Shown one piece after another: positions 5,686 through 63,672 of a DNA stretch of 63,672 bases. Numbering within the stretch: position 1 is the stretch's first letter; every line of letters starts with the position of its first letter. A program made the position numbers and the translations under genes. The DNA comes from Octopus bimaculoides (lineage: Eukaryota). Location: assembly GCF_001194135.2 (NCBI RefSeq), contig NC_069009.1:10881412-10945083 (forward strand). Reading direction: 5' to 3'. The notes under the pieces were generated by a model, which was given only the letters and a program-made list of their open reading frames with translations, did not search any database and was not told the DNA's origin.

Positions 5686-5757
5686 ATATCTGCATGACAA
5701 TAACATCACATATATTCAACGTGGTATCTTCGAAAATCTGATGAATTTAGAAAAAAT
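5686..5757 (+). CDS. LRR exon (72 bp, phase 2-2): [23 protein letters not shown](I)
   Basis: ttttatag acceptor, gtgagt donor, exactly 24 codons matching the xLxxNxIxxIxxxxFxxLxxLxxL consensus. Confidence 0.9.
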
Positions 5758-8700: not shown

Positions 8701-11700
8701 CATTGTGTATGCATGTGAATATAGATATATGTATCTTTTTGTGAATATATGTGAATATACGCATGAACATCAACGTATGTTTGTATTTCTTTCTGTAAAT
8801 TATTTACTGTGTTTACCTCTACATCAACGCTGATTACCATCCATGTCTCTCCCTTCTAATTGCATGTTTAAATATTTATTTTTTACACCTTCTAAGTTTA
8901 ATCAACTTCTTTTTTTTCTTATTATCTACGTCTTCTCCTGCTTATCCTCTTCCTCTTCTTCTTCTTCTTCTTCTTCTTCTTCTTCTTCTTCTTCTTCTTC
9001 TTCTTCTTCNNNNNNNNNNNNNNNNNNNNNNNNNNNNNNNNNNNNNNNNNNNNNNNNNNNNNNNNNNNNNNNNNNNNNNNNNNNNNNNNNNNNNNNNNNN
9101 NNNNNNNNNNNNNNNNNNNNNNNNNNNNNNNNNNNNNNNNNNNNNNNNNNNNNNNNNNNNNNNNNNNNNNNNNNNNNNNNNNNNNNNNNNNNNNNNNNNN
9201 NNNNNNNNNNNNNNNNNNNNNNNNNNNNNNNNNNNNNNNNNNNNNNNNNNNNNNNNNNNNNNNNNNNNNNNNNNNNNNNNNNNNNNNNNNNNNNNNNNNN
9301 NNNNNNNNNNNNNNNNNNNNNNNNNNNNNNNNNNNNNNNNNNNNNNNNNNNNNNNNNNNNNNNNNNNNNNNNNNNNNNNNNNNNNNNNNNNNNNNNNNNN
9401 NNNNNNNNNNNNNNNNNNNNNNNNNNNNNNNNNNNNNNNNNNNNNNNNNNNNNNNNNNNNNNNNNNNNNNNNNNNNNNNNNNNNNNNNNNNNNNNNNNNN
9501 NNNNNNNNNNNNNNNNNNNNNNNNNNNNNNNNNNNNNNNNNNNNNNNNNNNNNNNNNNNNNNNNNNNNNNNNNNNNNNNNNNNNNNNNNNNNNNNNNNNN
9601 NNNNNNNNNNNNNNNNNNNNNNNNNNNNNNNNNNNNNNNNNNNNNNNNNNNNNNNNNNNNNNNNNNNNNNNNNNNNNNNNNNNNNNNNNNNNNNNNNNNN
9701 NNNNNNNNNNNNNNNNNNNNNNNNNNNNNNNNNNNNNNNNNNNNNNNNNNNNNNNNNNNNNNNNNNNNNNNNNNNNNNNACCATAATCAACCTCATCAAT
9801 ATTATCTTCATCTCCACTACCATCATCCCTCTCTCCTTAGACTCTTATTTAGCCATACCAAGAAATTACCCTCCATCCTCTCCTTCCTACTCTAACTACT
9901 ATAGGAATTGTCTAACCACATTATTTTACATCAAACACTTCTATACATTTCCTAATCATTTCACATTTTATTTTATAGACATTTCGGTGATAATCATATT
10001 TTAAAATAATACTCCTCTCCGCGTTATTTTATTAATTTTATGTTCCAGATATTTGAATGAAAATAAGATCGAGAACATTCTAGCACGAACCTTCGCTGAC
10101 CTGCCCAGTTTAAAATATCTGTAAGTGAGATAAGGCTTGTTGATAATATCTCATTAACAATATATTACTAAATATTTAAAATCTTCCCATTTTGTTTCGC
10201 GTCCCGTCCTTCTTTCTCTTTTCATTCTCGTTCTATTTCGATAGAAGACTGTGCTTATTTGTGAATGTCTGCAAATATATTTCTCTGTGAGTGTGTGTGA
10301 ATACAAATGTGTATTGGCATGTATAACATCGTATGTNNNNNNNNNNCACCACCACCACCACCACCACCACCACCACTACTACTACCGTTCTTCCTCACCT
10401 ATTATATCTTTTACTCGTTGTTGTTCTTCTTTATCTGTTTTCCTTCTCTTGTTTCTTATCTTTCTTCTCCTTCTGCCCCACCCACCTTCCCCTTCGACCT
10501 CTCTTTCATTCTCATCCCCTTCCTCCAAAATCTTCTTCCAAATTTTAATCTTCTTTTCATTTCATCATCTTAAATTGCATTCACATCACATTTTCCAGGC
10601 TTTCTTTTCTTTTCTTTTCTATCGACAGTCTCATCGTATTCACCAACCTTACTATTACCATAATCTTCTGCACCGTCTTCAACGCCTGTAATTTTATCGT
10701 CATCAACTTATTCAGTATTATCCTCAATAGAAACAGCTTCAGCTTCAAAATTGTCATCGGAAACATCATCATCTTCACCATAATTGTCGTCATCATCATC
10801 GTTATCAAAAACACCATAATCAACCTCATCAATATTATCTTCATCTCCACTACCATCATCCCTCTCTCCTTAGACTCTTATTTAGCCATACCAAGAAATT
10901 ACCCTCCATCCTCTCCTTCCTACTCTAACTACTATAGGAATTGTCTAACCACATTATTTTACATCAAACACTTCTATACATNNNNNNNNNNNNNNNNNNN
11001 NNNNNNNNNNNNNNNNNNNNNNNNNNNNNNNNNNNNNNNNNNNNNNNNNNNNNNNNNNNNNNNNNNNNNNNNNNNNNNNNNNNNNNNNNNNNNNNNNNNN
11101 NNNNNNNNNNNNNNNNNNNNNNNNNNNNNNNNNNNNNNNNNNNNNNNNNNNNNNNNNNNNNNNNNNNNNNNNNNNNNNNNNNNNNNNNNNNNNNNNNNNN
11201 NNNNNNNNNNNNNNNNNNNNNNNNNNNNNNNNNNNNNNNNNNNNNNNNNNNNNNNNNNNNNNNNNNNNNNNNNNNNNNNNNNNNNNNNNNNNNNNNNNNN
11301 NNNNNNNNNNNNNNNNNNNNNNNNNNNNNNNNNNNNNNNNNNNNNNNNNNNNNNNNNNNNNNNNNNNNNNNNNNNNNNNNNNNNNNNNNNNNNNNNNNNN
11401 NNNNNNNNNNNNNNNNNNNNNNNNNNNNNNNNNNNNNNNNNNNNNNNNNNNNNNNNNNNNNNNNNNNNNNNNNNNNNNNNNNNNNNNNNNNNNNNNNNNN
11501 NNNNNNNNNNNNNNNNNNNNNNNNNNNNNNNNNNNNNNNNNNNNNNNNNNNNNNNNNNNNNNNNNNNNNNNNNNNNNNNNNNNNNNNNNNNNNNNNNNNN
11601 NNNNNNNNNNNNNNNNNNNNNNNNNNNNNNNNNNNNNNNNNNNNNNNNNNNNNNNNNNNNNNNNNNNNNNNNNNNNNNNNNNNNNNNNNNNNNNNNNNNN

Positions 11701-12505
11701 NNNNNNNNNNNNNNNNNNNNNNNNNNNNNNNNNNNNNNNNNNNNNNNNNNNNNNNNNNNNNNNNNNNNNNNNNNNNNNNNNNNNNNNNNNNNNNNNNNNN
11801 NNNNNNNNNNNNNNNNNNNNNNNNNNNNNNNNNNNNNNNNNNNNNNNNNNNNNNNNNNNNNNNNNNNNNNNNNNNNNNNNNNNNNNNNNNNNNNNNNNNN
11901 NNNNNNNNNNNNNNNNNNNNNNNNNNNNNNNNNNNNNNNNNATATATATATCAGTGTTTTTGTGCATAAGTCAATGTATGATGAGAGTGTAATTGACTTA
12001 TGTTTGTATTTCTATCTGTATATCTTTTACTGTGTTTATCTCTAGACCAACGCTCATTAACATCCATGACTCTCCCTTGTAATTGCATATTTAAGAGTAT
12101 ATTGTTACTATTAAATGTTTCTACACCTTACAACTTTTGTTAATGTCCTTCTTCTCCTCCTCCTTCTCTTCCTTCTCCCCTCCTCCTCCTTCTCCTTCTT
12201 CTTCTTTTTTCCTCTTCCCCTCCTCCTCCTCCTCCTGCTTCTTCTACTTATCGCCCTCTTCTTTCTTCTGATTCATTTTCTTTTTCTACTTCATCCACTT
12301 TTCTTATAAGATTTACGAATACATTTCTATATTACCTCTTTTCTCTCCCTAAATCTCTCTTTCTAAATCACATTTATTGTCTCACCATATGTGTATTTGT
12401 GAGTCTGAGTGTGTATCAATGATAATGCACGTGAATATGAGTATGTTTGATCATGTATCAGTCTGTCGTAATCTGTGCATATGATTGTGCTAACTCTTCA
12501 TCTCC

Positions 12506-12538
<33 letters not shown>

Positions 12539-12688
12539 CATTTAGAGAAAAGAACCGCAGTTCCTGAACTCATCTATGAAAATCCACAGTCGCATATAGA
12601 AAAATTTAATAAGTAAATACACTAAAAAGAACTATAATAAAATACTAAGTACTAATTATTAAAATAATATCACTAATATTATTATCAT

Positions 12689-12747
<59 letters not shown>

Positions 12748-15700
12748 GTGTGTTCTTCCTTCTGTGGATGAGACTGCATTACATTCAGTACAGAAAGATA
12801 TCCGCATATCATTTTCTCTCTCTTTCTTCCGCAACTATTTATATATCTTCCGCTTCTCTTTCTTACTTTTCTGTGGTCTTCCTTTCCTTCTTTACTTCTA
12901 ACCACTTATTTTACAACTTCCTTTATTTCATTATCACAATCATCATTAACGTTCCTATTCTCATCATCACCATATTCTTATTCGCTATTTGTTAAATATG
13001 ACTCTCACTTTTAAATATATATGCGGTATTAAAAAAAGGGAAAAGTGAAACCTGGGCAGACGAAAATGTGAAAACGAACGCTAATGACTGCTATTGATTT
13101 GAAAATATCTACCTCAGTGCGCTGCAGCTTATGGTCAGGAGGTTAACAGAAATACTCAATTAACAATCCCCGAATGCGTTTAATACCCTATTAGAAAATG
13201 GGGAAATTAACAAGCGTCATAAGTCCACATAAAGGTGTCAAAAAATCTCAATTAATTCGACGTGAAATTAGCCACAGCCCTGATCGTTTTGTTGTGATTT
13301 CTTTAAAGACATGCAAGAAAGCTCTCGCAAAACCCCTGCAAATACTTTTCCAGAGCTTCCTTACATATGGGAAACATCTCAAAGTGTTAGAAAAAGGTAT
13401 ATTGATTCAGGAGGAAGTAGACAAGATTCGAAATATTGCAGGTATTTCTCTCAGACCTCACGTGTTTAGAAAGTCATGAGATACATTGTCAGAGTGCAGT
13501 TGATTACGTTCCAAGAAGAAAGCTTGTACACTAACATACGGCATGGCTTCTGTCTACGAAGTAGTTGCCTTATATAGCAACCAGAGCAACGTGGCTGAGT
13601 ACTGAAACACCAGACATGGATGATATCTGGAATATACCATCATCAATATTCAGCCAACTTTAACTAGTCTGTAATTACAATGCTGATGTTTTTAATTGGT
13701 TGTGAATTGTTTAAAATGCGTAGATTTGTAATATAGATTTTTCTAGCTGTGAGAACCTTGTGCTGGTAATGGAATATATATTATGTCATTATTGCCGGAG
13801 TAGACGCTTCATTACTACGTTATGGGTGTTGGAAGAATACCTGATAATGAAACAATGTTGACATTAGTTAGTTCATTATGATGCATATTTTTTCATTAAG
13901 CGAATGTCACAAAAGTTTTGACATTGGCATTATTGTATATTGTAGAATTACAATTTAATTTCAGAATACTTTTTGATTATGATGGTATTCAGAATCAATA
14001 AATGTATCATGTATAACTAGTGTGCTTTACGGTACTTTATTATACTACATAGTACTTTGCTCGTTTTCTAATATTCTCGAATTTAAATAAGATAATAAAG
14101 TATTATTTCCCGTGAAGTAAAATCCAAGTGTCTATGGACTGACACTATGAAAGATATATATTTTTTCTACAAAACCGTTTCAACATGAACATTAATGTTT
14201 GCATATATTTTCAATATGGCCCTCAAAGTTATGAAGTGTTCTTCCGATAAGTGTTTTAATTATTCATGATTTATTTTTCTTCCAATGCTGTCGTTACATT
14301 GCCACTAGAGCATATATTGAAAATAATATTGGTACACAAGATGAGAATATTATGTGAAACAAACATTGTGCATACAACAGTCTCGTTGCTATTTTGTTAT
14401 TCTTATAGCTTATCTTCCATCTTTCGTTACCCGGATATCACAGAAGACTCTCTTCCCACGGGATAGCTAAGTTAGATTTATGGAATCTACTCATATCCAA
14501 ACTATAGGCAGAAAGATCATAGAGAAATAAAACAACTTGCAGTGAACATGAGCTTTATTCGGATAGTTTAGACAGCATATTAACAAGAGAAAAGAGATTT
14601 ATTGACTTTTACGTATTTTAACTAATAAAATATTTGTTTCTTTCTTCCAGGGATTTGAGTAACAACCGAATACAAAACTATGAGGATGGCGCGTTCTTAT
14701 TCCTTCCCAATATTAATTACATGTATGTACAACAAATTTTTCTTTATTGGAAAACCAAAAGTCTTTGTAATCACATAAAAAAGATGCCATCAGACTAAAC
14801 TCATAAAAAGATGTCTTCAAATTCACAGTTATTTAATATAGTTGACAATAAATAGCAATATGTTAGTTTTAATTTTAGGGGGCCAACATAATTATCTTGG
14901 AAGATTTACTTTTCTGATTGCAACGTCGGTTGTCAAATAGAATGAAGGTTGGTTTTATGTACTTAACTTTCATCCAGGCTCGGAAATACGTGGTGTGTTC
15001 AAAAGTTATGCAAAGCATTGGGCACAAAATGTATCAAACCTTTGTACATTTCACAAATTCTATTTAGTGTTATTGAAACTTCTCCTGTTGCGACAGACAC
15101 ACTTGATCCAGAGGTTCTTTCAGTGTTGGTATCAGTTCTGGAACGTCTTCCAGAAAGTGTTACGGAGCTCCGCTGTCGCTGTTTGCGTGGTTTCTTCTCG
15201 TGACTCAGATCGCTTCCCTTTCAGCGTCGTTTTCAGTTTGGGAAAGAGCGAGCAAGAAGTCATGCAGTGCCATGTTCAGAGAGTAGAGGGCCTCCCGAAA
15301 GAGTGGATTAATTGGATTACTTGCATTACGAAGTGCGTTCAAAATCTATTCAATTTTTTTTTGCCAACACGCCTGCCTCAGCGTACCTCGCTCGCGACTG
15401 AGGTTCGGCTATGTTTGAAGTAGTTGTACCACTCCTTCATCCACGTGTTGCCCATGGCATCATCGCCAAGGGCCGGTCGAATCTTCTGGGAAGTTTCAGC
15501 TTGGGTATCACTCAGCCTTTGCTAAAATTGAATGCAATCTCTCTGCTAGATGTATCCGATCATCTTGTGTAAAAACGAAAAACATACGAGTGCGGACTGC
15601 ACGTCTGTACCCTAGGCGTAACCGCTGGAGACTGGCGTAGCCTACTGACGCAGCATATCGACGGTGCGGAAATATTCGTGAATGTGCAGCAAGTGTGGTT

Positions 15701-16213
15701 TACGTCCCACCCAAAGGATTTTGCACACCTGGCATTAGTTTCAAGGAAAAAATAGTCTCATATTCTTAGGACGCACATCGTACACAGAATAAATCGGAGC
15801 TAGTTCAGTAGTGTATACACATACACATTAGGAATTTTAGAAATCTCGAAGGCCGGAGAATAGTTGTGAAATGTTTAGAAGGTCGAGTAAATATACCCTT
15901 TTAGGACGAGTAAAGGGAGCCCACAAGCTGCTACAGATACGAACTCTGTACTATTAAAATTCTGCATGAGCAGACTGTACCTCGGAGCTAAGCAATCTCT
16001 GACAACGAAAGATGTGTTTCTAAAGTTTAGATAACTTTTGGAACCGTAACCCGCTACAGGGTTACGGGTCACATTATTCCGTCTTATAATGGGAGAATTT
16101 TTACTCGATCTTCTAAGCTGTTTCTACAGCTAATCTCCTGCGTTCAGATTTCAATAATTTCTAAGCAACAAATACCAGTTTGAAGCCTCGATGCTTTTAT
16201 ATAAAAGAAATGT

Positions 16214-16248
<35 letters not shown>

Positions 16249-17748: not shown

Positions 17749-17783
<35 letters not shown>

Positions 17784-20078: not shown

Positions 20079-20124
<46 letters not shown>

Positions 20125-24230: not shown

Positions 24231-24278
<48 letters not shown>

Positions 24279-28861: not shown

Positions 28862-28926
<65 letters not shown>

Positions 28927-33924: not shown

Positions 33925-33955
<31 letters not shown>

Positions 33956-34886: not shown

Positions 34887-34940
<54 letters not shown>

Positions 34941-36652: not shown

Positions 36653-36685
<33 letters not shown>

Positions 36686-43258: not shown

Positions 43259-43293
<35 letters not shown>

Positions 43294-46204: not shown

Positions 46205-46241
<37 letters not shown>

Positions 46242-48992
46242 NNNNNNNNNNNNNNNNNNNNNNNNNNNNNNNNNNNNNNNNNNNNNNNNNNNNNNNNNNN
46301 NNNNNNNNNNNNNNNNNNNNNNNNNNNNNNNNNNNNNNNNNNNNNNNNNNNNNNNNNNNNNNNNNNNNNNNNNNNNNNNNNNNNNNNNNNNNNNNNNNNN
46401 NNNNNNNNNNNNNNNNNNNNNNNNNNNNNNNNNNNNNNNNNNNNNNNNNNNNNNNNNNNNNNNNNNNNNNNNNNNNNNNNNNNNNNNNNNNNNNNNNNNN
46501 NNNNNNNNNNNNNNNNNNNNNNNNNNNNNNNNNNNNNNNNNNNNNNNNNNATATATACGTAGAGGTATGTGCATACCGACATCCACCTGTATGTATAGGT
46601 GCATATCTGAGTACAGGACATTGCAAACAAACGTAGACGAGAACACACGAGCCACATAGAGAACATTCTCCTTCATCAGCCACCCACGTTTTAACACCGG
46701 CGTTTCGACGAGCTTGGGCGAGACGCATCGCTAAAACGGCTCATCCCATGGACCGCAGATTAAATTTGTATAAGCAAATTAAATCTAGCCATGGAGGAAT
46801 GTAGTGGCGGACAAAAAAACAAGACAGGAAGAGAGGTAATGGTGTCAATAAATCTCAAAAGTGTCAGGTAATGCTAAGTAAGTGTTATGGACAGACTATA
46901 GTTAAACTCCAGGTTCGGTGATTATTCGAATGAGGCGTCCAACGTAGGTCATATATCAACATGCGTATATATAAAACAATGAACAGAATGAGATAAAAAT
47001 ACAAATTAACAGGGTGAGATAAAATCCCAAATTCTTCACTCCACCATTTTACTACCCTACCCACCTCTCTCTGCCATTAACTAAATCTCTATCACTACAT
47101 GCCTCACACTCCTTTACACTTTACTCTCTCATCTCTTTACACCACTATATCTTTCTATCTCACTCGCACTCACCTTCCCATTCCTTCTATCAATTTATCC
47201 TGACTGACCGCTATCCAGTACACTTTCCCTCCCTCTCTTCATTTCTTTATTATCTCTCTCCCAGCTTTCCTTTTCTTCTTTCTTCTTGTTTTTGATTTAA
47301 CCTTACAGACAACATTCTCAACTTTTAAGTCACTTCAAAGAAACCCTCGAATCAATAAGACGGTTTACAAACCCTATGCCTGGAATAACCAATTTTAAAT
47401 ACTATTGGAACTTACACACAAGGTACAGGAAACGTATATGTATACAATTCTGCTTAAATAATGGAACTGCAGATACAATATCCCTGTATGCCTCATGTCT
47501 GTTTTCATTCCTCTACTTCACTCTCTATTTCATATCTTCTCTAGAATAACTATTGCCTAACCATTTTCTACCACCTTTTCCAATAAAGGGATATATAAAA
47601 CATCCCGGAAACAGCTGTAAGACTTTCTTGAATCCTATTGGTGAAGAGGTTTTCATCTTGTTGGTGAAAAAATTCTACAGTAGACCTGATATCGTCATCA
47701 CAGAGCTTCTGTTTCCCAGTTAGGTAGTTTTCCTGTTGGGGAAGCAGATGACAGTTAAAAGGGGCCAAATCAGGAGAATAGGAAGGCTGATCAACAAGTT
47801 CAAAGTCATAGTTAAGAAATTGTAAGAATGGAGGAGGTGTTAGAATCAGAGTAGAGGTGAAAAAGATAGATTAAGAGTAGAGGGAGTTAAAAGTCACTCA
47901 ATAAATATTCAAGGAATATGTTTTACCATAAAGTAAATAAACAGGGTGTGCGTTGCGCTACATGGATGTATCAAGGCTTGAACAGAAAGAACACAGCAAG
48001 GAGAAAACCCTGAGACGAAAGCAGAGAAAACGGGAAACTAGACAAAATCATATATATATATATATATATGTGTAAATATATAAAAATAAAAAGATAAAGA
48101 GAGCAAAGGTAAGGTTGAAGAATTTTATTGATAGATTCTTACAGCTGTTTCTGGGAAGATCCAGTACTTCCCTTCATCGGAGACAGAAAAAAATAAAGTA
48201 ATCTATTATTATATCCATAGGCGGATATTTTTAGTATGAAGTGGTAAATAGTGTGATGTGNNNNNNNNNNNNNNNNNNNNNNNNNNNNNNNNNNNNNNNN
48301 NNNNNNNNNNNNNNNNNCAGTGGTAAATATCCGTGTAGAAATTCGTGCAAATTAATCCTTGTGTGAATAATCCGGAAATTTATGTTGGAACGAGAGTTGA
48401 TATAGCATAGATAGCAGAGGTATATATATTCTATATTGCAATAGATTTTTGCTTGTTTACTTGAAGAATGTCCAAGTCAAGTGAAAAGTTAGCGGTAATT
48501 AGGTCAAGTCAAGAAGATAGAATGTGGAAGGTGATAGAGGAGATATAGAGGCGGAGGAAGTTAGCGATATATTTATGGTCAGTTGGTCTTAACAGGGTAG
48601 AGGGGAAGAGCATATAGAGTGAAGGAGGAATAGGGGGATGAGGTTAAAAGGTCTAGTGAGTAGGAAGGAATGCGTCTGTGTAGTATATAGGTGGTGGGGG
48701 TATGAGTGATAAACCAAGGACAGAAAAAGCTGTAAGACTCTATCCATAACATTCTTCAACCTTGCCTTTGCTCTCTTTATCCTTTTGTTTTTATATATTT
48801 ACATATACACACGCTAATACACGACTTATAATACCCAATCCTGTTCGTACAACGACTGGGGCAAACTAATCGGTATACAGCACTTACTCGGTATTACCTG
48901 TATCCTCCGGGGTTTGGTTAAATCCAATACCCTCCTCAACCTTATATATTTATATATATATTGACGATATTTTCTGCCCTTTTCAGGTATAG

Positions 48993-49027
<35 letters not shown>

Positions 49028-52000
49028 TGAACAGTGAAAGATGTTAGAGAGCTTACTGGTTAAAATCTTAGTGTAGAAAAGTTAGCTGACACTGTGGACA
49101 ACGCCATCAGACTATTGGAAAAGGTTTACATATATCACGTTGATATCCTCCCGGTATGAAAATACCAGTATCATAACTGCTGCTCTATGCTCTGTATACA
49201 CTGTAAAGATTGTAAGATCTGACATGGACTTCATGAAAACAAAGTTTCCCAAACTGTGATGGTCTTTGGGTGTGTCTCCAGTGTGAATAACATCATGCCG
49301 CCCCAAAATCTTTGAATAGAGCCATAGGCACAATAATTCGGATGACTATGCGAAGCTGCTGGAACTATGGTCAAAGCCTGCCTGGAGGAGTTGCTGGTAG
49401 AAAGCCATATGTGTGATTGCAGATTTCGTCTCCTTGCCATATCGGAAGAAACAGACATGGTTGTTAATGAATATCTGCGACTCCACGAGCCCAAATTTCT
49501 GGCATTCTAATTCTCCTGATTGTAATCCCATGATTTATTATGTTCGGGACGCGGTTGAGAAGGAACAAATTCCTCTGCTTGCTACACCAAGGCCGAGTTG
49601 GCGGCCATAGTGAAAAACACAAACGCCTGTTTCACTCTTGAAGCAGTGCTGGAAGCTGAGGGCAGCTACTTTCTCTAAACTGTTAAATCTTAATTATAGA
49701 CTTGTTGATCTTTCAGTTTTTAGAATACGTTTATATGGATAGGGTATTGTACTTTGCTTTTATGCAAACTGTCAAATGTATCCACAACACCCTGTTCCAC
49801 TAGCCACCATATATTCTCTATATTCTGTCCTTGTTTCTTTCTGTTTCTTTCTGTGGAAGAGCGTAGGCTCGAAACGTTAAAGAGTTGTTCACTTCCAGAG
49901 CGTTAAACTAATACATCTGTTTATTGTCTACACCACCTGTCTTCGTCCTTTGTTTTTTTTTTGTGTGAACTGTCCCTACGTGCATACATACATACATACA
50001 TACATGCATACATACGCACGTGCGTACGTACGTATATACATGCATACAGACATACATACATACATACATACATACATGTACACATACAGATACACACAAA
50101 CACAAAGTAGGGTTAAAATCCAAGCTGCGTCCTCTAAGAACATCTGCTTATTCCAGTATTGAAATCCAGTTTGTTCTTATTTTTACGTGAGATACATATT
50201 AGAGTAGAAAATGCTGGAAATGTTTTCAGAGTTATTTAATAACAGGGAAGCTTGAAAAATTTATTCACCATTATGCATATTCTATCTATTCAGCATTACA
50301 CGTTTTGTTTGTATGTCTGAAGAGTTCCTGATAGGAAATGTTATGTGTTTATCCAATATATGAAGGTATTTTCCAGTATATAAAACACAGCTTTGAATAC
50401 CGTAATATATATTTCATATGCATATGTTTTATTTGTTTTACAGTGGTTTGCAATGAAATCACTACAGCAACTAGCAATGGCACTTTCCATTGGCCAATGA
50501 CAAAAATCGGAAATAATGTGACGATCCCATGTCATGCAGACGTAGCGACAAGATACTGGTTCGTTTCTATTGTTTTATTTCACCTCACATTTTTGAAGTT
50601 TTCAGTGACATTCTATTGTGAGAGAATGTTTCATGGCATAATAAATAAAACACCCAGAGAGATTAAGATGATAAAATTAACGTGCGTCTGTTGAAATCAT
50701 TCAATTCAGCTATTTTACATTTTGTATCGGATACCATATATTTTTATCTTAGCCTCACCACTGAGATTTCCTTTTTTGGTGACGTTAGATGAAGGTTTAA
50801 AACATTTGTTGTTACGATTCCTGTAAGTGCCAGCATGTTACAAAATATATTCAGGGAAGAAAACACATATCTAAACTCAGCCAACATTCTTCATCAGCAA
50901 TTCTACTGATTTCGGGGTAATATTATTTTATACGATTTTTTTATTTACTGTAGAGCGTAAGTTTTGTTACTGTATAATTGGTAAGCGGAGAANNNNNNNN
51001 NNNNNNNNNNNNNNNNNNNNNNNNNNNNNNNNNNNNNNNNNNNNNNNNNNNNNNNNNNNNNNNNNNNNNNNNNNNNNNNNNNNNNNNNNNNNATGGAAAG
51101 TGCCATTGCTAGTTGCTGTAGTGATTTCATTGCAAACCACTGAAAAACAAATAAAACATGTGCATATGAAATATATATTACGGTATTCGTAGCTGTATTT
51201 TATGTACTGGAAAACACAGTCATATATTGGATAGACATGTATAAAATTTCCTATTGAAAATACTTCTGACAGAGAATCAAATAAAACAAGATGAATGAAT
51301 GATTCAAACTTCTTGTTTTGATGTATAAAATGACTCTGCACACAGCACTCCCAGTATCTTTTAGTCTAATATATATCTCACATAAAAATAACNNNNNNNN
51401 NNNNNNNNNNNNNNNNNNNNNNNNNNNNNNNNNNNNNNNNNNNNNNNNNNNNNNNNNNNNNNNNNNNNNNNNNNNNNNNNNNNNNNNNNNNNNNNNNNNN
51501 NNNNNNNNNNNNNNNNNNNNNNNNNNNNNNNNNNNTATATATATATATACATACACATATTTGAGCACGTTTGTGTGTGCGTGTCCGTGTCTGAGATGTG
51601 TATGCATGTATGTATGATTGTATGTATGAATGTATGTATGTGTGTGTACAAGGTATTTTAGATAAATANNNNNNNNNNGTATGTATGAATGTATGTATGT
51701 GTGTGTACAAGGTATTTTAGATAAATATGACAGTTTGCATAAAATGAAAGTACGATATCCCATCTAAATACAAAACTATTTTTAAAAATGCAAGAATATC
51801 AACTTGATTATAACTAGAAGTTAACAGATTAATCAAAGTATCCACCCTTAGATTCTACAATTGCCTCAGAACGGAAGCTGGCGTATGTGTTCTTCACTAT
51901 GTCCGTGAGAATATCTTCAAACATCTTGATCTTGCCGACCAATTCGGCCTTGGTGTCGCAAGCTGAGCTATTGATGACGTTCTCAACTGTGTCCTGCACA

Positions 52001-55000
52001 TAGAAAGTTCTTGGATTACAAGTGGATAATTAGAAGGCCAGGAATTTTGGGCCGGCGAAGTCGTATACATTCTCTGACTACCACTTCTTTCCGGTCAAGG
52101 AGCCTAATCATAAAGTAATGGTGACAGTTATGTTTTACAATTTACATCTGTAGTGCGGTGGCTAAAATGTGTGTCTTAAATACATTTGTACAGCCCCCAG
52201 AATGTTAAGTTTTTCAAACTTAATTCTGACCAATCAGTTTGTGACTTCACTAAATTACTTAAGACGATTGGTGTTCGGTTTAGGCGTCAGCGTTTGTTGA
52301 GCATGTCAAGAGACCTATATTTTGACTCTGCCCAAAGCAGTAATTGCTTGACTATTTTTAGAAATGTTGTAAATAACATTTCCCAGGGAGTTTTACATTT
52401 CAAATATCATCATCGGCATTATCACCACCTTTGTTAATGTTATCGTTGTTGTTGTTATTCGTGGTGGTGGTTGTGGTTGTAGGATGGGCAGCGGTAATAG
52501 ATCTTTAAACACTAAATAAGATTATATTTGCTGANNNNNNNNNNNNNNNNNNNNNNNNNNNNNNNNNNNNNNNNNNNTTTAATAGTGTTGTTGTTGTTAG
52601 TGGTAGTGGTTGCAGCAGTAAAAATAATACCTCTAAGTGTTATTATTATTATTGTTTATTTAGCTTGGGTTGGAATTTATCAATACAGTTCTTTTCTCTG
52701 ATCTTTCATATGATATGAATTTGAGTGTTTGCATAGAAAAGAAAGAGTTCTTAACGTAGTTCATCTTCAATTTATGGTGAAACGAGTGTTCATGATGCCA
52801 CTTGTTCCGGTGTATATTACGTTGTTGAGATTGTCCCCTTTTAATGTTCTTTCTCAGAGCTCTACATTCTTTACTGTAATTTCTAGCATATTTCTCGAGA
52901 AATAATTGTTTCTGTTGCCATAACTTTCTTGATCTGCTTTCCTCGTATGAGATATATGCGGTCCATAGTTTTCGCATTTTTCTACTATATTTCTCATCTT
53001 TAGTGTTGATATTTCGTCTCCCATTTCACCGTGTATAGCTTCGTATTTGGCTTTTTACTGGGATTGTTTCCACACGGTAATAGAGATTTCGGTCCTAAAT
53101 TTTTCTTAAAGTAAGCTCCCATCGAAGTTTCGTTTCCTCTTCTGCTTCTCCTACAATTTCTTTAATTAGGTACTTCCGGGAAAGTATGGGTTCCGCTAAT
53201 GAAATCTGTTTCGAATGTATTTCGTTTCGTTTTTTCGTTTTTATATGCTTCCAGTAGTTTTGTTTTATTATGTTAAGAATTTTTTCCCATGTCTGACACA
53301 TCTCTTTTATTTTTCGATGTCCTTATTTTTCCACATTTCGTTCGTTTATTTCTGACATCCAAGAGAGTTGTGGTAGGGTTAAGGTTAGGGTTAGGGTATA
53401 ATTTCAGCTAAAGTTTTAATTTCAGAAATTATATGTTCATTAACAAGTTTTCCGTCTGTAGACTGTTTTTCTATTTGTGACATAACCACACACCCAAATT
53501 GTGTAAATGTCTCAGCTAAGCCTGTTTGTACTTCTAATTGATACAGGGGCCCACAATGTATGGCATTGTTTTCCCTTTTAATTGTCGCTATATATAACTC
53601 GCTAAAGATGCAGCATTACCGGCGATTCTGGTGGAATATATTAAGAATGAACAGATATGTTATTGCTTGGATTCTCATTGATGTCTGTTTGACCGCCATC
53701 AACAGGGATCAGTGTAATTTGCTTTCTGCTTTTTATAAACAAGAACTCATCATACNNNNNNNNNNNNNNNNNNNNNNNNNNNNNNNNNNNNNNNNNNNNN
53801 NNNNNNNNNNNNNNNNNNNNNNNNNNNNNNNNNNNAAAATCACTTTCCGAAGACGAATATCAACAGTTATTAGACATTCAAGGTTGATTTTGTCAGAACA
53901 TATTAAGAATGAATACGTCATCCTTGGAAATTGTTTTAAGAGAAATCTGACAATGCCAACAACCAATAATTCAGACAGCAAAACATGAAATTTTACTGAA
54001 TACATTCTAAATATTACATATCAATTTAAAATTAGCTAAATAGACATCTAGCAGCGAGTTTGACTCCAATTAAAAATGGGAGATAACTCAAGTAACCTGA
54101 AGGCAGTGATTGGCAGAATTGTTAGCACGTGCAGCAAAATGCTTCATGGTATTTGTTACAACCGAGTGAATTTTGAGTTCAAACACGGCTGATGTCCATT
54201 TGTTCTTCATCCTTTCCAGGGTCATAAAAAAATGTACCAGTTGAGGGTAGTGGATAGGTGGGAGAGGATACTTTGCATTACGTCTTTCGGCACTATACTT
54301 TGTGAGTTCAAATACCAGCATGAGCTCCTTGGCTGGTAGAAACAAAGCATCAGCCAGTTTAATGACACCACGTGGTAGGTTGGATGCCATTAGTGGAGGA
54401 GGAAATGTTTGTTGTAAGTATTTAAAAGGCATCTTGAATTTGATGTTATCTACTTCTCTCCTGCCCACCACTCTTGAAGGCCTTGTAAAAGAATCATGGA
54501 CACTGGTCTCCCAAGAAAATCTCGAATTCTCAGAAATCAATATGTCTTTAACAAAAACAGTTATGAAACGAGCTTCTGCCTACACAGGCGTCATCAGCAC
54601 AGTGCTATATTACGTTGATACCATCAAACTTAGACGTATACAGAATAAATAGAAAACGGTTATGGCCTGAACTAATTTGTGTAGTCGAAAGTAAAGTGAG
54701 GAAAACAAACAAATCAGAGTGGCGAGTGGTAAAGATTCCAACGAAGAAAATTGCAAAATAAATTGCAGATTTAGCGAAAGTTATTTCGATTTGAAAAAAG
54801 GTACACAATTAGATGTATGCGAGTTAGTGTTTTTGCCTGTGTGCTTGGGTGTGTGTGGAATAGCATCACCTATTTATGATGATGCTGAGGATGACGACGA
54901 TGACGACAACGAAGATGATGATGAATGTCGTGCTGATAATAATGACACGAAACACACAACTTACNNNNNNNNNNNNNNNNNNNNNNNNNNNNNNNNNNNN

Positions 55001-57954
55001 NNNNNNNNNNNNNNNNNNNNNNNNNNNNNNNNNNNNNNNNNNNNNNNNNNNNNNNNNNNNNNNNNNNNNGGTCTTTAGTAATTGTAGATAGTACTGTGCA
55101 AGTAATAGTAAATACTTCACTATTCTTCTCGGAACTGAAATAGAATTGTAAAAAGAAATTGCAAAATATGAGTTTTCACCACACTCAGCGGANNNNNNNN
55201 NNNNNNNNNNNNNNNNNNNNNNNNNNNNNNNNNNNNNNNNNNNNNNNNNNNNNNNNNNNNNNNNNNNNNNNNNNNNNNNNNNNNNNNNNNNNNNNNNNNN
55301 NNNNNNNNNNNNNNNNNNNNNNNNNNNNNNNNNNNNNNNNNNNNNNNNNNNNNNNNNNNNNNNNNNNNNNNNNNNNNNNNNNNNNNNNNNNNNNNNNNNN
55401 NNNNNNNNNNNNNNNNNNNNNNNNNNNNNNNNNNNNNNNNNNNNNNNNNNNNNNNNNNNNNNNNNNNNNNNNNNNNNNNNNNNNNNNNNNNNNNNNNNNN
55501 NNNNNNNNNNNNNNNNNNNNNNNNNNNNNNNNNNNNNNNNNNNNNNNNNNNNNNNNNNNNNNNNNNNNNNNNNNNNNNNNNNNNNNNNNNNNNNNNNNNN
55601 NNNNNNNNNNNNNNNNNNNNNNNNNNNNNNNNNNNNNNNNNNNNNNNNNNNNNNNNNNNNNNNNNNNNNNNNNNNNNNNNNNNNNNNNNNNNNNNNNNNN
55701 NNNNNNNNNNNNNNNNNNNNNNNNNNNNNNNNNNNNNNNNNNNNNNNNNNNNNNNNNNNNNNNNNNNNNNNNCTGGCTAACAAAAAAAAAATGAAGCAAA
55801 GATTATGAGAATCCTTAAATACTAATTTCATAGGCCAGTCCATATAAACTGTGCATTAGAAGAGATTCACTAATCAATTGGTTGGTGGATTAGACGCAGA
55901 ATATAAGCGCAATCGTCTCTCTGCTATATACATATACGTAATGCATGTATCTATGCTTGTATGTGTGTGTTTATATATNNNNNNNNNNNNNNNNNNNNNN
56001 NNNNNNNNNNNNNNNNNNNNNNNNNNNNNNNNNNNNNNNNNNNNNNNNNNNNNNNNNNNNNNNNNNNNNNNNNNNNNNTGTGTGTGTGTGTTCATGCTTG
56101 CAAGTATGTTCTATATATTACTGGCCTACACAGGTTAACAGTTAGTGAGCCATTCTAGATACATGCAATTTATGAAACGTAAGTTACTGTCAATAAACAC
56201 ATGTTTCACAGACTGACTTCTTCCTGATGAAGAGAATAACTTGCGGGAATCAAACTGCATTTTCAGATTCCAGGAGACAGTTTTGTGAATTACACCACAG
56301 AGCAACAAACACAAAAACTTATCAAACGAGGGAGCTTAATCCATTTTCTTCTAGCTTTTAAGTAAGTTATATTACCTCGGAATGTTAATTGATCAGTCAC
56401 TTAACGCTAGTGGGATACAATACTTCACATTTGATAGCAGGTCATCTCATAAATTCTGTCCGAATTTTGAATAAAAAANNNNNNNNNNNNNNNNNNNNNN
56501 NNNNNNNNNNNNNNNNNNNNNNNNNNNNNNNNNNNNNNNNNNNNNNNNNNNNNNNNNNNNNNNNNNNNNNNNNNNNNNCACAGCAAGTATGAGACTGTCA
56601 TGTCGTTTCCTTTTGCATCACTTTAATCCTTCTTTCACTCTTAAACCATTGACTGAACATTCAAAGTCGCTTTCTTATTTGAGTTTCTATTTCTTTGTAG
56701 CTGTTGGTTGTCCAGGTCATACTTCTATGCTGCTTTCCTGGCTCCCGTGGCGATCATCCTTACCTTCAACCTTATCATGTTTTCTCTCGTTATCTGCCAT
56801 CTTATCTCAATGCAACATAACGAGAGATTTGAACACAAATCAAGAAAAATACGTGCTTTTGGTATCGCTGGTTTATTCTTTCTACTTGGGCTGTCGTGGG
56901 TCTTAGCATTCTTGGCGTTTGGTGAAGCAGCCAAAGTGTTTCAATTTCTTTTTGTTACTTTTAATACTCTGCAAGGAATGTTTATCTTCCTATTCTACTG
57001 CTTATTCAAGGAAGATGCCAGAGATGTCATCTGCTTGTTTGTATGTAAACGAAAATCATGGAAGCCTAGGCAAGTTCGAAAGAATATTAAAAGTAAGTGC
57101 AGTTTGGTCTTTCTTATTTCTGCCACTAACAAAACCAATATTGTCATGATTGATATAGACACAAACAACACCATCACTATCAACATCATTACTCTTAGGA
57201 TAGACATCATCATAATTAACAACCTCAGCTTTGTAGTCATCATCATTATCATCTCCATCTGTATATACAACGAACAAAAAGAATAGATAGCTCGCGTTTC
57301 AATAGTGTGGTCAATCACCAATACAAAATACTTTACATAATATTAGGTAAATTCTCGTTGATGCGTTACCGTCCCATTTCTTCAGGTGATATTCATCCGT
57401 CGTCTGGTGAAATACAATGAATCTATGAAGATAGAGACATTTATAAACAAACAGAATGGAATAGCAATTTTCAAAGTGGGACAGAGATATTAAAGCCTAC
57501 GACGAAGCAAAATGCGTGATTCCAAATAATTGTATTCATATACTAAAAGAGGTTTGATCAAAATGGTCATATTAGTTTCAGATGTTGAAATTTACTGGTG
57601 AGTCTCCGATGAACAGTTAATGTTTTATAGTACACAAATTAATTATAAACGCTAGTAATTTTTAGTTTAAAAAATGATATTTTATATAGTTCTAGTGGCG
57701 TGCTGGCAGAATCGTTAGGGCGCCGGGTAAAATATTAAACTGCATTTCGTGTGCTTTTACGTTCCGAGTTCAAATTCCTCTTCGGTTGACAATAACATTC
57801 ATCCTTTCGGGCTGAATACTGAGATCCATATAATCAATTCTCTCCCTCCCTGAACTTACTTGAAACCAATATTTTATACAGTTTTCTCATTATGTTTCCA
57901 GCTCCAAGTTCTGGTGATGAAACAGAAGATAAAACAACAGAAACGAACTTATAA
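5686..57954 (+). CDS. Adhesion GPCR (LRR - LRRCT - Ly6/uPAR - SEA-like - HormR - [GAIN/TM1-4 not seen] - 7TM), partial multi-exon model
   Basis: Eleven exons with AG/GT boundaries. Phases are compatible through LRR, LRRCT, Ly6 and the first SEA exon, from SEA exon 2 to HormR, and from the TM5-7 exon to the last exon. One link is unresolved (43097 to 45056). The 5' end, GAIN and TM1-4 are not visible, and the TM exons lie across 100-N joins. Confidence 0.7.
6206..7519 (-). mobile_element. Tc1/mariner-superfamily element, decayed
   Basis: TA-flanked imperfect TIRs (CCAGGTGTAT... / ...TAAACCTGG); minus-strand [16 protein letters not shown] (catalytic D region) and an HTH-like N-terminus. Confidence 0.7.
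7987..8287 (+). pseudogene. Dead LRR pseudo-exon interrupted by a SINE
   Basis: Removing the SINE and one TSD copy gives AG|A GAT TTG TAT GTT ACT AAC ATC GAG (g) AAC TTG GAA GAA GGA ACT TTT GAA AAC CAG CCC AGT TTA ATA TAT CT = [24 protein letters not shown]. It has one extra base and GG in place of the GT donor. Confidence 0.8.
8000..8215 (-). mobile_element. SINE with 12-bp target-site duplication GATTTGTATGTT
   Basis: TSD at 7988-7999 and 8216-8227; body matches the family seen at 8332, 19570, 27900 and 57690. Confidence 0.85.
8332..8490 (+). mobile_element. SINE, same family, inverted relative to 8000-8215
   Basis: gtcagaatcgtt...ccgggcgaaat...gaggtcgactttgcc...ggggtcgatgta; ends approximate. 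Confidence 0.7.
10049..10120 (+). CDS. LRR exon (72 bp, phase 2-2): [23 protein letters not shown](L)
   Basis: tgttccag acceptor, gtaagt donor, LRR consensus. Confidence 0.92.
13230..13600 (+). mobile_element. CR1/Jockey-like LINE RT fragment
   Basis: SPD....[24 protein letters not shown] and a downstream HGFCLRSSC motif (canonical QHGF...RSC). Confidence 0.65.
14651..14722 (+). CDS. LRR exon (72 bp, phase 2-2): [23 protein letters not shown](I)
   Basis: tttctttcttccag acceptor, gtatgt donor, LRR consensus. Confidence 0.92.
14989..15780 (-). mobile_element. Internally deleted mariner
   Basis: TA-flanked imperfect TIRs; the N-terminal HTH ([13 protein letters not shown]...[12 protein letters not shown]) is joined directly to the C-terminus ([13 protein letters not shown]), with the catalytic core missing. 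Confidence 0.7.
16540..16950 (+). mobile_element. mariner N-terminal fragment
   Basis: [38 protein letters not shown]. Confidence 0.75.
19349..19518 (+). CDS. LRR C-terminal cap exon (phase 2-1): [56 protein letters not shown](N)
   Basis: ttttgtttataattgcag acceptor, gttagt donor. The CxC...C...C pattern matches LRRCT, and phases match both neighbouring exons. Confidence 0.88.
19570..19790 (+). mobile_element. SINE
   Basis: tggcgagtt..cacaatcgttggcacgccg...gagttcaaactccgtccaggtcgactttgc; ends approximate. Confidence 0.7.
25943..26034 (+). CDS. Ly6/uPAR domain exon 1 (phase 1-0): [30 protein letters not shown]
   Basis: tgtattgtatag acceptor, gtaaat donor; LxCxxC start motif; in frame with 19518 (A+AT=Asn) and with 32642. 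Confidence 0.85.
27900..28062 (+). mobile_element. SINE, 5' part; its tail resumes at 32489-32530 after the hAT insertion
   Basis: ...ggggtcgATCTAATC | hAT | ATCTAATCgaccggacccct..tgtgcctagagtagaaaag. Confidence 0.75.
28659..29098 (-). mobile_element. tRNA-derived SINE with internal (CA)n, nested in the hAT
   Basis: Minus-strand head aggcgcaagagtggctgtgtggt...ggttcagtcccactgcgtggc; same family as 38133 and 61715. Confidence 0.8.
31866..32250 (-). mobile_element. tRNA-derived SINE (second family), nested in the hAT
   Basis: Minus-strand head ggaggcgcaatggcccagtggttagggcagtggactcgcggtcataggatcgcgggttcgattcc with Pol III A/B-box-like motifs. Confidence 0.8.
32642..32825 (+). CDS. Ly6/uPAR domain exon 2 (phase 0-1): [61 protein letters not shown](E)
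   Basis: ttattgttacag acceptor, gtcagt donor; terminal CCxxxxCN motif diagnostic of three-finger folds. Confidence 0.9.
33300..33930 (+). mobile_element. RTE-type LINE RT C-terminal fragment
   Basis: [13 protein letters not shown]....[31 protein letters not shown] resembles the RTE LLYG.ETWT.Y..H...L..FH...LR motif. Confidence 0.7.
35331..35640 (-). mobile_element. Penelope-like GIY-YIG endonuclease C-terminal fragment
   Basis: [16 protein letters not shown]...[14 protein letters not shown] matches the C..C..EK..I.....LN.RSE....CRH tail of PLEs. Confidence 0.6.
37179..37260 (-). ncRNA. Degenerate minimal type-I hammerhead ribozyme (PLE-type)
   Basis: Minus strand: CUGGAGA core (A6 changed to G), stem II GAUUC/GAAUC, GAAA, palindromic stem III ACAGCUGU, GUC cleavage triplet, then AGAG. 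Confidence 0.55.
37326..37416 (+). ncRNA. Degenerate minimal type-I hammerhead ribozyme (PLE-type)
   Basis: Stem I ACAAC-CU / AG-A-GUUGU, core CUGAAGC (A9 changed to C), stem II GAUUCA/UGAAUC, GAAA, palindromic ACAGCUGU, GUC triplet ending at 37408. Confidence 0.6.
38133..38485 (+). mobile_element. tRNA-derived SINE
   Basis: aggcgcaggcgtggctgtgtggtaag...gagttcagtcccactgcg...gtggatttggtagacggaaa. Confidence 0.8.
39082..40344 (-). mobile_element. Tc1-family transposon, near full length, decayed
   Basis: TIRs CAGGGATTGGACAAAACAGTGGAAAC / GTTTCCATTATATTGTCCAAAACCTG; ORF 39180-40037 with [22 protein letters not shown] and DLNIIE. Confidence 0.9.
40638..41896 (+). mobile_element. mariner transposon, full length, decayed
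   Basis: TA-flanked TIRs CGAGGGATGTTCATTAAAGAT / ATCTTTAATTAACACCCCTTG; [12 protein letters not shown] and [13 protein letters not shown] motifs split by stops and frameshifts. Confidence 0.88.
42958..43097 (+). CDS. SEA-like domain exon 1 (phase 1-0): [46 protein letters not shown]
   Basis: Long pyrimidine tract then ctcttcag acceptor, gtaagt donor; in frame with 32825 (G+AA=Glu). The SEA assignment is by pattern only. Confidence 0.7.
45056..45213 (+). CDS. SEA-like domain exon 2 (phase 2-1): [52 protein letters not shown](M)
   Basis: cctatttcag acceptor, gtaagt donor, open frame; conserved in the inverted copy at 54965-55134; in phase with 50444. Confidence 0.8.
47540..47790 (-). mobile_element. 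mariner C-terminal fragment
   Basis: [13 protein letters not shown]...[24 protein letters not shown]. Confidence 0.7.
48060..48810. repeat. Element with about 90-bp inverted termini carrying a hammerhead-like motif
   Basis: gataaagagagcaaaggtaaggttgaagaat...cttacagctgtttctg pairs with cagaaaaagctgtaag...attcttcaaccttgcctttgctctctttatc. Confidence 0.75.
48136..48186 (-). ncRNA. Degenerate minimal hammerhead ribozyme
   Basis: Minus strand: UCU-CCGAUGA-A-GGGAAG(loop)CUUCCC-A-GAAA-CAGCUGU-A-AGA; core U4 changed to C. Confidence 0.55.
49846..49883 (+). ncRNA. Degenerate minimal hammerhead ribozyme at a Penelope-type terminal repeat
   Basis: Stem I UCUUU/AAAGA, core CUGUGGA (A6 changed to U), stem II GAGC-GUAG-GCUC, GAAA, palindromic ACGU stem III. 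Confidence 0.6.
50444..50558 (+). CDS. Hormone-receptor (HormR) domain exon (phase 1-2): [37 protein letters not shown](C)
   Basis: tttgttttacag acceptor, gttcgt donor; C....G.F.W..T..G....PC....ATR.C is the GAIN-adjacent HormR pattern of adhesion/secretin GPCRs. Confidence 0.88.
51093..51139 (-). CDS. HormR exon of the inverted paralogous copy (visible 5' part; the rest is in the gap)
   Basis: 47/47 nt identical to 50444-50490; intact tttttcag acceptor. Confidence 0.75.
51720..52110 (-). mobile_element. Tc1/mariner fragment, same family as 49100-49794
   Basis: Reverse complement aligns with about 49440-49775 (cccaaatt..tggc.ttctaatt; acaccaaggccga.ttgg; ttttatgcaaactgtca). Confidence 0.6.
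52650..53330 (-). mobile_element. Probable LINE 3' fragment
   Basis: Weak resemblance to the LINE RT C-terminal RKRRL..YGH..RM....L region; heavily decayed. Confidence 0.35.
54965..55134 (-). CDS. SEA-like exon 2 of the inverted paralogous copy (3' part in the gap): [21 protein letters not shown]...
   Basis: 60/65 nt identical to 45056-45120; intact ctatttcag acceptor and gtaagt donor (54959-54964). Confidence 0.78.
56701..57092 (+). CDS. Adhesion-GPCR 7TM exon, ECL2 to TM7 and helix 8 (phase 2-1)
   Basis: tttctttgtag acceptor, gtaagt donor; CWL, TM5 [22 protein letters not shown]6 FFLLGLSW and TM7 [14 protein letters not shown] are family-B2 signature motifs. Confidence 0.93.
57902..57954 (+). 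CDS. Terminal coding exon: (T)[16 protein letters not shown]-stop
   Basis: tatgtttccag acceptor; phase 1 matches 57092 (A+CT=Thr); ends in a class-I PDZ-binding-like motif. Confidence 0.75.
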
Positions 57955-61224: not shown

Positions 61225-61380
61225 CACATCAAGTAAGTAATAAGAAGCACCAAGTATCGTTGACTAATTATGCTATGTAATTTACCCGTTAAATTAAAAG
61301 AAAAATTTGAAGATGGACCTGCTTCCGTATTCTTTGTAATCGTTTTGGATTCACACACCTGAAAATTCGTGTGGGTGTGG

Positions 61381-61454
<74 letters not shown>

Positions 61455-62620: not shown

Positions 62621-63672
<1,052 letters not shown>

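Follow-up and report, generated by a model that had tools for sequence, protein, structure and literature searches.

One question is raised by a stretch of the Octopus bimaculoides genome: do the leucine-rich repeat (LRR), Ly6/uPAR (LU), SEA-like and HormR exons at its front and the transmembrane (TM) exon further on belong to a single adhesion G-protein-coupled receptor (aGPCR)? The window, i.e., the whole stretch of 63,672 nucleotides (nt) that was analysed, originates from chromosome CM046629.1 (GCA_001194135.2). Its TM5-7 exon matches O. bimaculoides proteins at NCBI at 99-100%, and positions 46777-63672 are 100% identical to CM046629.1, contigs and gaps alike. The window has a G+C content of 36% and contains 24 runs of N, three of which are exactly 100 N long (50993-51092, 55979-56078, and 56479-56578). 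A preliminary description, made from the sequence alone, had read the exons as parts of one receptor. In our analysis, the window is probably a gappy stretch in which at least two members of a single aGPCR family, and probably three, are represented by pieces. The front exons (positions 5686-50558, referred to as gene A or piece A) probably encode the outer part of an LRR-LU-SEA-like-HormR adhesion receptor, and the TM5-7 exon probably belongs to another transcript.

Front exons of gene A and the domains they encode

All ten front exons were found with AG/GT borders (Table 1). Spliced in frame, as the preliminary description had proposed, they yield 354 residues that are identical to residues 428-781 of P0032, an 801-residue model of the locus (P-numbers denote protein models and L-numbers denote DNA records). 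The three LRR exons are identical in phase and in length. The link exon of the SEA-like region, which the preliminary description had left unresolved, was recovered at 36488-36564 by tblastn with paralogous proteins. Since P0032 holds about ten further LRRs upstream of the part encoded here, the beginning of gene A lies upstream of the window. All gaps that the scan program flagged (9010-27729) are intronic. Joins across them are backed by matching exon phases, by an identical order of exons in L002, the O. sinensis gene of P0025, which has no gaps, by collinear homologous proteins of other octopus species, and by RNA contigs.

RNA evidence was taken from Logan contigs of public RNA runs (X1-X3 and X25-X28). 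Transcription of the front exons was observed directly, as contigs from X25-X28 cover LRR3, LRRCT, LU-b, SEA-1, and SEA-3 without mismatch. The junctions SEA1>SEA2 and SEA2>SEA3 are present. The junctions LU-a>LU-b and SEA3>HormR1 rest on only 13-14 letters; for contigs over LU-b, the 14 letters upstream are the end of LU-a. The window's own LRRCT>LU-a junction was not isolated in RNA, contigs at the highly conserved LU-a exon being common to paralogs.

Table 1 Features of the window (positions count from its first letter)
Feature	Position	Strand	Evidence and remarks
LRR exon, 72 nt, phase 2; first family exon within the window	5686-5757	+	AG/GT, in frame; residues 428-451 of P0032
LRR exon, 72 nt	10049-10120	+	AG/GT, in frame; P0032 match
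LRR exon, 72 nt	14651-14722	+	AG/GT; exact RNA contigs ending at both borders, one with 458 nt upstream
LRRCT exon, four-cysteine cap	19349-19518	+	AG/GT; exact RNA contig 19351-19467; AlphaFold2 (AF2) confidence (pLDDT) about 85
LU domain exon 1 (LU-a)	25943-26034	+	AG/GT; RNA contigs respect both borders, many common to paralogs
LU domain exon 2 (LU-b), end CCIGNLCN	32642-32825	+	AG/GT; exact RNA contigs 32640-32800; three-finger matches
SEA-like exon 1	36488-36564	+	tblastn, AG/GT; exact RNA contig 36504-36564 continuing into SEA exon 2
SEA-like exon 2	40378-40430	+	AG/GT; RNA junctions on both sides
SEA-like exon 3	45056-45213	+	AG/GT; exact RNA contigs 45070-45213, depth 200-320 in X25-X27
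HormR exon 1	50444-50558	+	AG/GT; RNA continues into HormR exon 2; weak HRM matches in relatives
Diverged copy of 45.0-50.5 kb in inverted orientation; fragment of a second member of the family	51093-55192	-	Self-BLAST, translation, paralog-type RNA contig
TM5-TM7 exon of a family member	56701-57092	+	P0001/P0002 with PF00002; RNA junctions from TM4a and TM4b
Last coding exon, then stop	57902-57954	+	GT..AG joint 57092>57902 in X1-X3; C-terminus of P0001
Tc1-type transposase open reading frame, intact, 285 residues	39180-40037	-	HTH_Tnp_Tc3_2 E 5e-11, DDE_3 E 2e-7; in the SEA1-SEA2 intron
Tandem C2H2 zinc-finger array, separate gene downstream of the receptor tail	62579-63672	+	zf-C2H2 E 4.5e-17; runs off the window end

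The LRR assignment is strong (LRR_8 E 3.7e-74 in P0032, Pfam), with tandem 24-residue LxxLxLxxN repeats and a four-cysteine cap whose cysteines are invariant or nearly so. The LU stretch starts with LQCQTC, ends with CCIGNLCN and follows the LxCxxC/CCxxxxCN framework. It has 12 cysteines, of which 11 are invariant across 20 paralogs and the twelfth is nearly so. When the paralog profile was compared with PDB sequences, only three-finger proteins matched in the LU stretch, namely the ACVR1 ectodomain (E 0.014), LYPD1/Lynx2 (E 0.022), and LYPD6; matches to ACVR1 and LYPD1 spanned E 0.014-0.026. These alignments span the whole domain, with cysteines matched through CCxxxLCN. The AF2 model has a pLDDT of about 80 over residues 60-150 of the ectodomain piece. 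Foldseek placed Lynx2 (6zss; template-modelling score 0.67, 27% identity, probability 1.0) and Lynx1 (2l03; score 0.60) among the top six of 350,542 chains. On predicted fold and profile matches, the stretch is very likely a real Ly6/three-finger domain, and the structure and profile searches bear out this element of the preliminary description, with Pfam matches below threshold.

For the SEA-like region, two AF2 models give a beta-alpha-beta-beta-alpha-beta, ferredoxin-like arrangement (pLDDT about 75-85). The Haliotis homolog matches Pfam SEA (PF01390) at E 5.5e-5, its 23.7 bits lying just under the cut-off of 26.4, and the octopus profile aligns to the homologous Haliotis stretch at 93%. 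The SEA-like assignment is reasonable, not proven. Each of the 13 family members examined matched Pfam HRM at E <= 1; the best E-value was 5.7e-5, and every match lies under or close to the cut-off. The window holds the first HormR exon only, for which AF2 confidence is low and the model too poor for use; the HormR assignment is consistent with these data.

The octopus receptor family and its molluscan relatives

With a composite query, 73 proteins were retrieved; almost all come from O. sinensis, O. vulgaris, and O. bimaculoides, and most are named 'adhesion G-protein coupled receptor G6-like' by NCBI. Their domains were mapped with segments of P0025. LU and seven-transmembrane (7TM) regions occur together in 17 proteins. 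The combination of LU, HormR, GAIN, and 7TM was found in 12 full-length models from the three Octopus species (SEA-like detected in 11 of them; several also with a signal peptide and LRRNT). The earlier proposal that an ectodomain of this type sits on aGPCRs is thus upheld by complete models that add GAIN with the GPCR proteolysis site (GPS) and 7tm_2. The domain order was observed directly in these relatives, as was the conserved GPS motif with the Stachel-like TSFALLMDV. All 12 models carry CSC-x-x-L↓T(S/N)FA (arrow, cleavage point), and nine carry CSC[DN]HL↓TSFA. In P0025, Pfam matched GPS at E 8e-14 and 7tm_2 at E 1.8e-37, and 7tm_2 reached about 1e-50 in P0116 and P0119. The solved structures closest to GAIN+7TM of P0025 are ADGRG2 (E 4e-73) and ADGRG6 (E 5e-66).

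The family varies in its modules and in its annotation. P0047 and P0067 have two or three tandem LU domains, and variants with two or three SEA-HormR repeats exist (variant set P0047, P0067, P0024, P0041, and P0062-P0068). In 'isoform X2' models the ectodomain is spliced straight to a short last exon (...LLDESSSTGNGTEDRTAETNF); such isoforms would be secreted or soluble. Many front halves in the family carry annotations as LRR genes in their own right, under the misleading names 'toll-like receptor 5', 'chaoptin', 'decorin-like', and 'SLIT and NTRK-like 4', and are interleaved with models that hold GPS/7tm_2 only (examples among P0041, P0094, P0095, and P0003). Such annotation distorts the numbers of LRR proteins and of aGPCRs counted in octopus genomes. 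A second cluster of the family lies on CM046629.1 at 0.75-0.91 Mb (L003 and L004), 10 Mb from the window. A single O. vulgaris or O. sinensis ortholog could not be assigned to gene A, as different parts point to different relatives.

An octopus-specific aGPCR expansion, 'group 3', with LRR in 5 of 22 sequences and with expression reported in sucker and axial nerve cord, was described by Ritschard et al. 2019 (PMC6408891). The present family is very probably the same expansion. Both are octopus class-B expansions of co-localised genes with GPS and an adhesion 7TM, some with LRR. On the other hand, the paper reports no Ly6/three-finger, SEA, or HormR module and treats the group as octopus-specific, whereas the ectodomain design described here also occurs in gastropods and a bivalve.

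This wider distribution emerged from an exhaustive HMMER search of an LRRCT+LU profile against 1.84 billion representatives, which gave only 44 proteins at E <= 0.001, octopus paralogs among them. Outside octopus, matches came from 'ADGRG6-like' proteins of Argonauta hians (a partial model), Haliotis cracherodii and H. rufescens (1232 residues), and Ylistrum balloti (1168 residues), and from a Nucella lapillus protein without a family name (1322 residues). A Batillaria attramentaria protein was matched at the level of the LRRCT+LU profile. LRR, GPS, and 7tm_2 are present in the proteins of abalone, scallop, and whelk, and in the sequences of Haliotis, Ylistrum, and Nucella one sees cysteines in an LU-type pattern that ends in CCLGxxC(N/K) or CCSGELCN. 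Furthermore, when the LRRCT+LU profile from octopus was compared with the Haliotis receptor by hhalign, the two aligned at 94%. Given that abalone, scallop, and whelk receptors share it, the LRR-LU architecture is mollusc-wide and older than cephalopods, with a strong expansion in octopuses. The preliminary description had taken the receptor for a lineage-specific product of exon shuffling within a cephalopod expansion. The shuffling part is not supported, the same LRRCT+LU block being found in Haliotis, Ylistrum, and Nucella; the expansion part stands for octopus, although the design itself is mollusc-wide. It had also asked whether the architecture was already described and widespread: widespread in molluscs it is, but the Ly6 module did not appear in the portions of the literature that were searched.

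Matches to the profile of LRRCT+LU, or of LU, also came from echinoderm proteins, with E-values from 1e-4 to 3e-6, including P0115, a Lytechinus pictus 'mucin-2-like' protein of 1975 residues, and P0109 of Holothuria, with four LU stretches. Given these matches, the LRRCT-LU pairing may be older than molluscs or may have arisen more than once.

The TM5-7 exon and its relation to gene A

Between the first HormR exon and the TM5-7 exon (50558-56701) lie nine gaps, including the three of 100 N. In O. sinensis L002, 11 exons spread over 29 kb separate the two. None of these 11 expected exons was found in the window by tblastn, so no GAIN/GPS exon is present there, in keeping with the earlier remark that GAIN and TM1-4 are not visible. 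RNA of gene A runs from 50558 into HormR exon 2 (CSSRRSEMPPK). The TM5-7 exon is spliced in RNA from a TM4b exon (…TNNYIRVEQV) and a TM4a exon (…FMKRSSIVAWG). When HormR exon 2, the TM4a end, the TM4b end, and gap read-through were sought in the window and in L001, L003, L004, and L005, only the TM4a end was found, on L005; the 3' half of gene A was not located among these records. The newer assembly was considered as a means of closing the gaps, and its record (L001, GCA_001194135.2) has the same contigs and the same gaps. Since window positions 46777-63672 match it contig for contig and gap for gap, the chromosome-scale release is only a re-scaffolding of the same short-read contigs. P0078 and P0045, GAIN-7TM models on the same chromosome, were rejected as the missing half because they lie 10 Mb away.

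L005 is the unplaced scaffold LGKD02101539.1 (2258 bp). It holds a TM3-4a exon, a 987-N gap, and then a 99.5% copy of window positions 56660-57054. In all likelihood this scaffold represents either the second haplotype or a duplicate assembly of what is missing from the window upstream of 56579. P0002, the NCBI model on this scaffold, reads into an intron. In X1 and X3, the sole contig over the TM5-7 exon is unspliced through 56579 into the assembly gap. X2 contains two forms: in one, TM4b is joined to TM5 as normal (TM4b>TM5); in the other (TM4a>TM5), TM4b is left out and the frame is shifted.

The two parts are further separated by an inverted block on the minus strand (Table 1). In this block a SEA3' exon (55130-55071) and a HormR1' exon (51140-51093) look intact at their starts, and each is truncated by a gap. 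The block is collinear with 45002-50490 and 67-86% identical to it, intron included, and 47 nt at the start of HormR1' are identical to the plus-strand copy. The palindrome is centred within the 100-N gap 50993-51092. We considered a haplotig and ruled it out, because the identity is only 67-86% even with introns counted; the block is a diverged paralogous copy.

RNA from the two parts is reciprocal. Front exons reach roughly 200-900x in X25-X27; in X26 they stand at 276-900x with depth 0 on the TM5-7 and last exons. None of X25-X28 is among the runs holding TM-exon words. X1-X3 hold 86-95% of these words; of the LU-b words the fraction in X1 and X2 is 0.00, and SEA-3 has depth 0 in X1. The preliminary description had asked for one transcript across LRR, Ly6, and 7TM exons; the RNA runs hold either the front exons or the TM exon and not both. 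Ranks of sequence identity are discordant as well. For the N-terminal part, the full-length models P0023, P0027, and P0029 are the closest relatives (72-77%), yet for the TM exon they belong to the most distant ones (47-54%). Of the class B2 7tm_2 region, the window holds TM5-7 only (P0001, PF00002), in an exon whose membership of the LRR/LU gene is not supported. The missing exons, the inverted copy, the reciprocal RNA, and the discordant ranks together make a single transcript unlikely, and the join of the LRR/Ly6 exons to the TM5-7 exon made in the preliminary description is not sustained. The TM5-7 and tail exons are probably the 3' end of a separately expressed family member, or else their linkage to gene A cannot be demonstrated.

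A single gene, with front exons and TM5-7 exon in the same receptor and the GAIN and TM1-4 exons hidden in gaps, would explain why the parts share a strand and stand in the correct order, and the family architecture requires a 3' end of this kind. The gaps in 50993-56578 include three whose true size is not fixed by their 100 N, and the TM4a and TM4b exons that feed the TM5-7 exon are likewise missing from the assembly. We nevertheless regard this explanation as unlikely in view of the front-exon depth of X26 against zero on the TM and last exons, the mutual absence of TM-exon and LU-b words, the minus-strand SEA3'-HormR1' block between the parts, and the opposite identity ranks. Somewhat better placed, yet still improbable, is the idea that gene A encodes an LRR-LU-SEA-HormR protein that is secreted or lacks a 7TM in some other way, like a number of the annotated paralogs and isoforms. 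P0041, from the same O. bimaculoides chromosome, is modelled as LRR-LRRCT-LU-SEA-HormR-SEA without 7TM, and in eight models from O. vulgaris and O. sinensis the ectodomain is followed immediately by the ...LLDESSSTGNGTEDRTAETNF exon. The SEA3 donor and the last-exon acceptor are both in phase 1, so that a shortcut 45213>57902 stays in frame, and front exons are very abundant in runs without any TM exon of the locus. Gene A RNA, however, passes from SEA3 to HormR exons 1 and 2 and not to a terminal exon, and the last exon of the window has depth 0 in X26. Moreover, many short models of the family are visibly truncated by the assembly or read into introns (P0032, P0051, and P0011), and 12 relatives are complete receptors.

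The identity of the LU stretch itself can also be disputed, as a cysteine-rich linker might mimic the CCxxxxCN ending without being a true three-finger domain. Such a linker could account for the absence of any octopus member at the Pfam threshold, for weak three-finger-clan matches in only 2 of 14 family members, for PDB profile E-values of only 0.014-2, for 12 cysteines rather than 8-10, and for a predicted helix at 112-125. We consider it quite improbable, since all PDB matches in the stretch are three-finger proteins whose alignments cover the domain from end to end and pair its cysteines, Lynx2 and Lynx1 rank among the leading Foldseek hits, the cysteine framework is invariant over 20 paralogs, and the profile aligns to the Haliotis receptor.

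Several observations weigh against the explanation we prefer, that gene A is the outer part of an aGPCR and the TM5-7 exon part of another transcript. Transcripts of gene A were followed as far as HormR exon 2, and its GAIN/7TM end is predicted from homology; P0041 and P0062-P0068 are family members without 7TM. Over HormR1, the RNA contig differs from the window by one mismatch and has a depth of 926-1567x, 3-5 times that of the other gene A exons. Given this mismatch and depth, a near-identical paralog, possibly the copy on the minus strand, must share the contig. Depth in Logan contigs, which are short, gives only a rough measure. For the domains, Pfam placed no octopus LU above threshold (Activin_recp E 0.046, CD59 E 0.61), and because its matches are only sub-threshold the domain has never been annotated by pipelines. 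Foldseek on the SEA-like model returned generic ferredoxin-like folds only, with no SEA entry in the top 50. Pfam SEA has no match in the octopus proteins, in whose sequences no GSVVV-like autoproteolysis motif was seen either.

With gene A as the outer part of an adhesion receptor, homology suggests that it most likely continues with the rest of HormR, a GAIN domain with GPS, and an ADGRG-type 7TM. By analogy with known receptors, the LRR and LU modules would bind a partner on another cell or in the matrix, and the SEA-like and HormR modules may serve as stalk or regulatory modules. GAIN would cleave itself at HL↓T; in the relatives, only the motif HL↓TSFALLMDV was observed. Pull on the N-terminal fragment, or its removal, would then expose the tethered peptide TSFALLMDV and trigger 7TM and G-protein signalling.

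Cys-loop receptors expanded in molluscs include the octopus sucker chemotactile receptors. A speculative reading, to which we give very little weight, is that the LU domain acts as a Lynx-type 'prototoxin' within an aGPCR, binding Cys-loop (nicotinic-type) receptors and coupling channels to G-protein signalling. Tandem LU duplications and secreted isoforms would then diversify recognition of these receptors. The only basis for the idea is that Lynx1 and Lynx2 are the closest fold matches, together with the reported expression in sucker and axial nerve cord (PMC6408891). Cys-loop (nicotinic-type) receptors are hugely expanded in molluscs (PMC6896357).

Comparison with known proteins and other features of the window

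The ectodomain of vertebrate ADGRG6/GPR126 consists of CUB, pentraxin (PTX), SEA, HormR, and GAIN (PDB 6V55). The octopus family, named 'ADGRG6-like' by NCBI, resembles it in the membrane-proximal order of SEA-like, HormR, GAIN, and 7TM and in the GPS with HL↓T, and the zebrafish ADGRG6 ectodomain 6v55 matches P0025 at E 5e-26. It differs in having LRRNT-LRR-LRRCT-LU in place of the distal CUB and pentraxin domains. Moreover, the 6v55 alignment starts at residue 492 of that structure, with no sequence match into its SEA domain. Neither CUB nor PTX was matched in any scanned family member, so the family lacks the ectodomain expected of an ADGRG6 ortholog; fish ADGRG6 matches carry both PF00431 and PF00354. 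ADGRA2/ADGRA3 (GPR124/GPR125) are built as LRR-LRRCT-Ig-HormR-GAIN-7TM. They share with the octopus family an N-terminal LRR block with an LRRCT cap, followed by HormR, GAIN, and 7TM, and there are weak precomputed matches of the family to PF26588 (GAIN_ADGRA3). However, the octopus proteins have LU and SEA-like domains where ADGRA has Ig, and their 7TM is nearer to ADGRG.

The best structural and profile matches of the LU domain are to Ly6/uPAR proteins (Lynx1, Lynx2/LYPD1, LYPD6, and CD59) and to activin/TGF-beta receptor ectodomains. It resembles these in its length of about 85 residues, its LxCxxC start, its CCxxxLCN end, and the three-finger beta fold of the AF2 model. Those proteins are small glycosylphosphatidylinositol-anchored or secreted proteins or whole kinase-receptor ectodomains, whereas the octopus LU is an internal aGPCR module. 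Two exons encode it, finger 3 has an extra pair that brings its cysteines to 12, and some proteins carry two or three copies in tandem (P0047 and P0067). The portions of the 2026 IUPHAR review of aGPCRs that were searched make no mention of Ly6, uPAR, or three-finger domains. The other aGPCR literature searched likewise mentions no characterised aGPCR with a Ly6/uPAR domain, in agreement with the preliminary description. What is new here is the recognition of a Ly6/three-finger module in an aGPCR family and its mollusc-wide conservation; the family itself is annotated and partly published. Ectodomain modules are the basis on which aGPCRs are sorted and studied. The LU module, conserved from bivalves and gastropods to octopuses and part of a family with a strong octopus expansion, adds a new candidate type of ligand-binding module to the repertoire. 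The locus by itself is a fragmentary gene in a poor assembly, and the functions proposed for the module are predictions.

Beyond the receptor pieces, the window holds an intact transposase reading frame and a zinc-finger gene (Table 1). Remnants of mariner-like reading frames lie at about 40850-41720 on the plus strand, with no Pfam match. A 202-residue open reading frame at 416-1024 on the minus strand looks like the N-terminal part of a retroelement polyprotein, with no Pfam match at E <= 0.01. Finally, L001 (positions 1-21178, corresponding to the window from 46777 onward) carries a recorded plus-strand gene whose 1076-residue product has no Pfam match. This gene record spans the whole locus, overlaps the 122-residue receptor-tail model, and extends past both ends.

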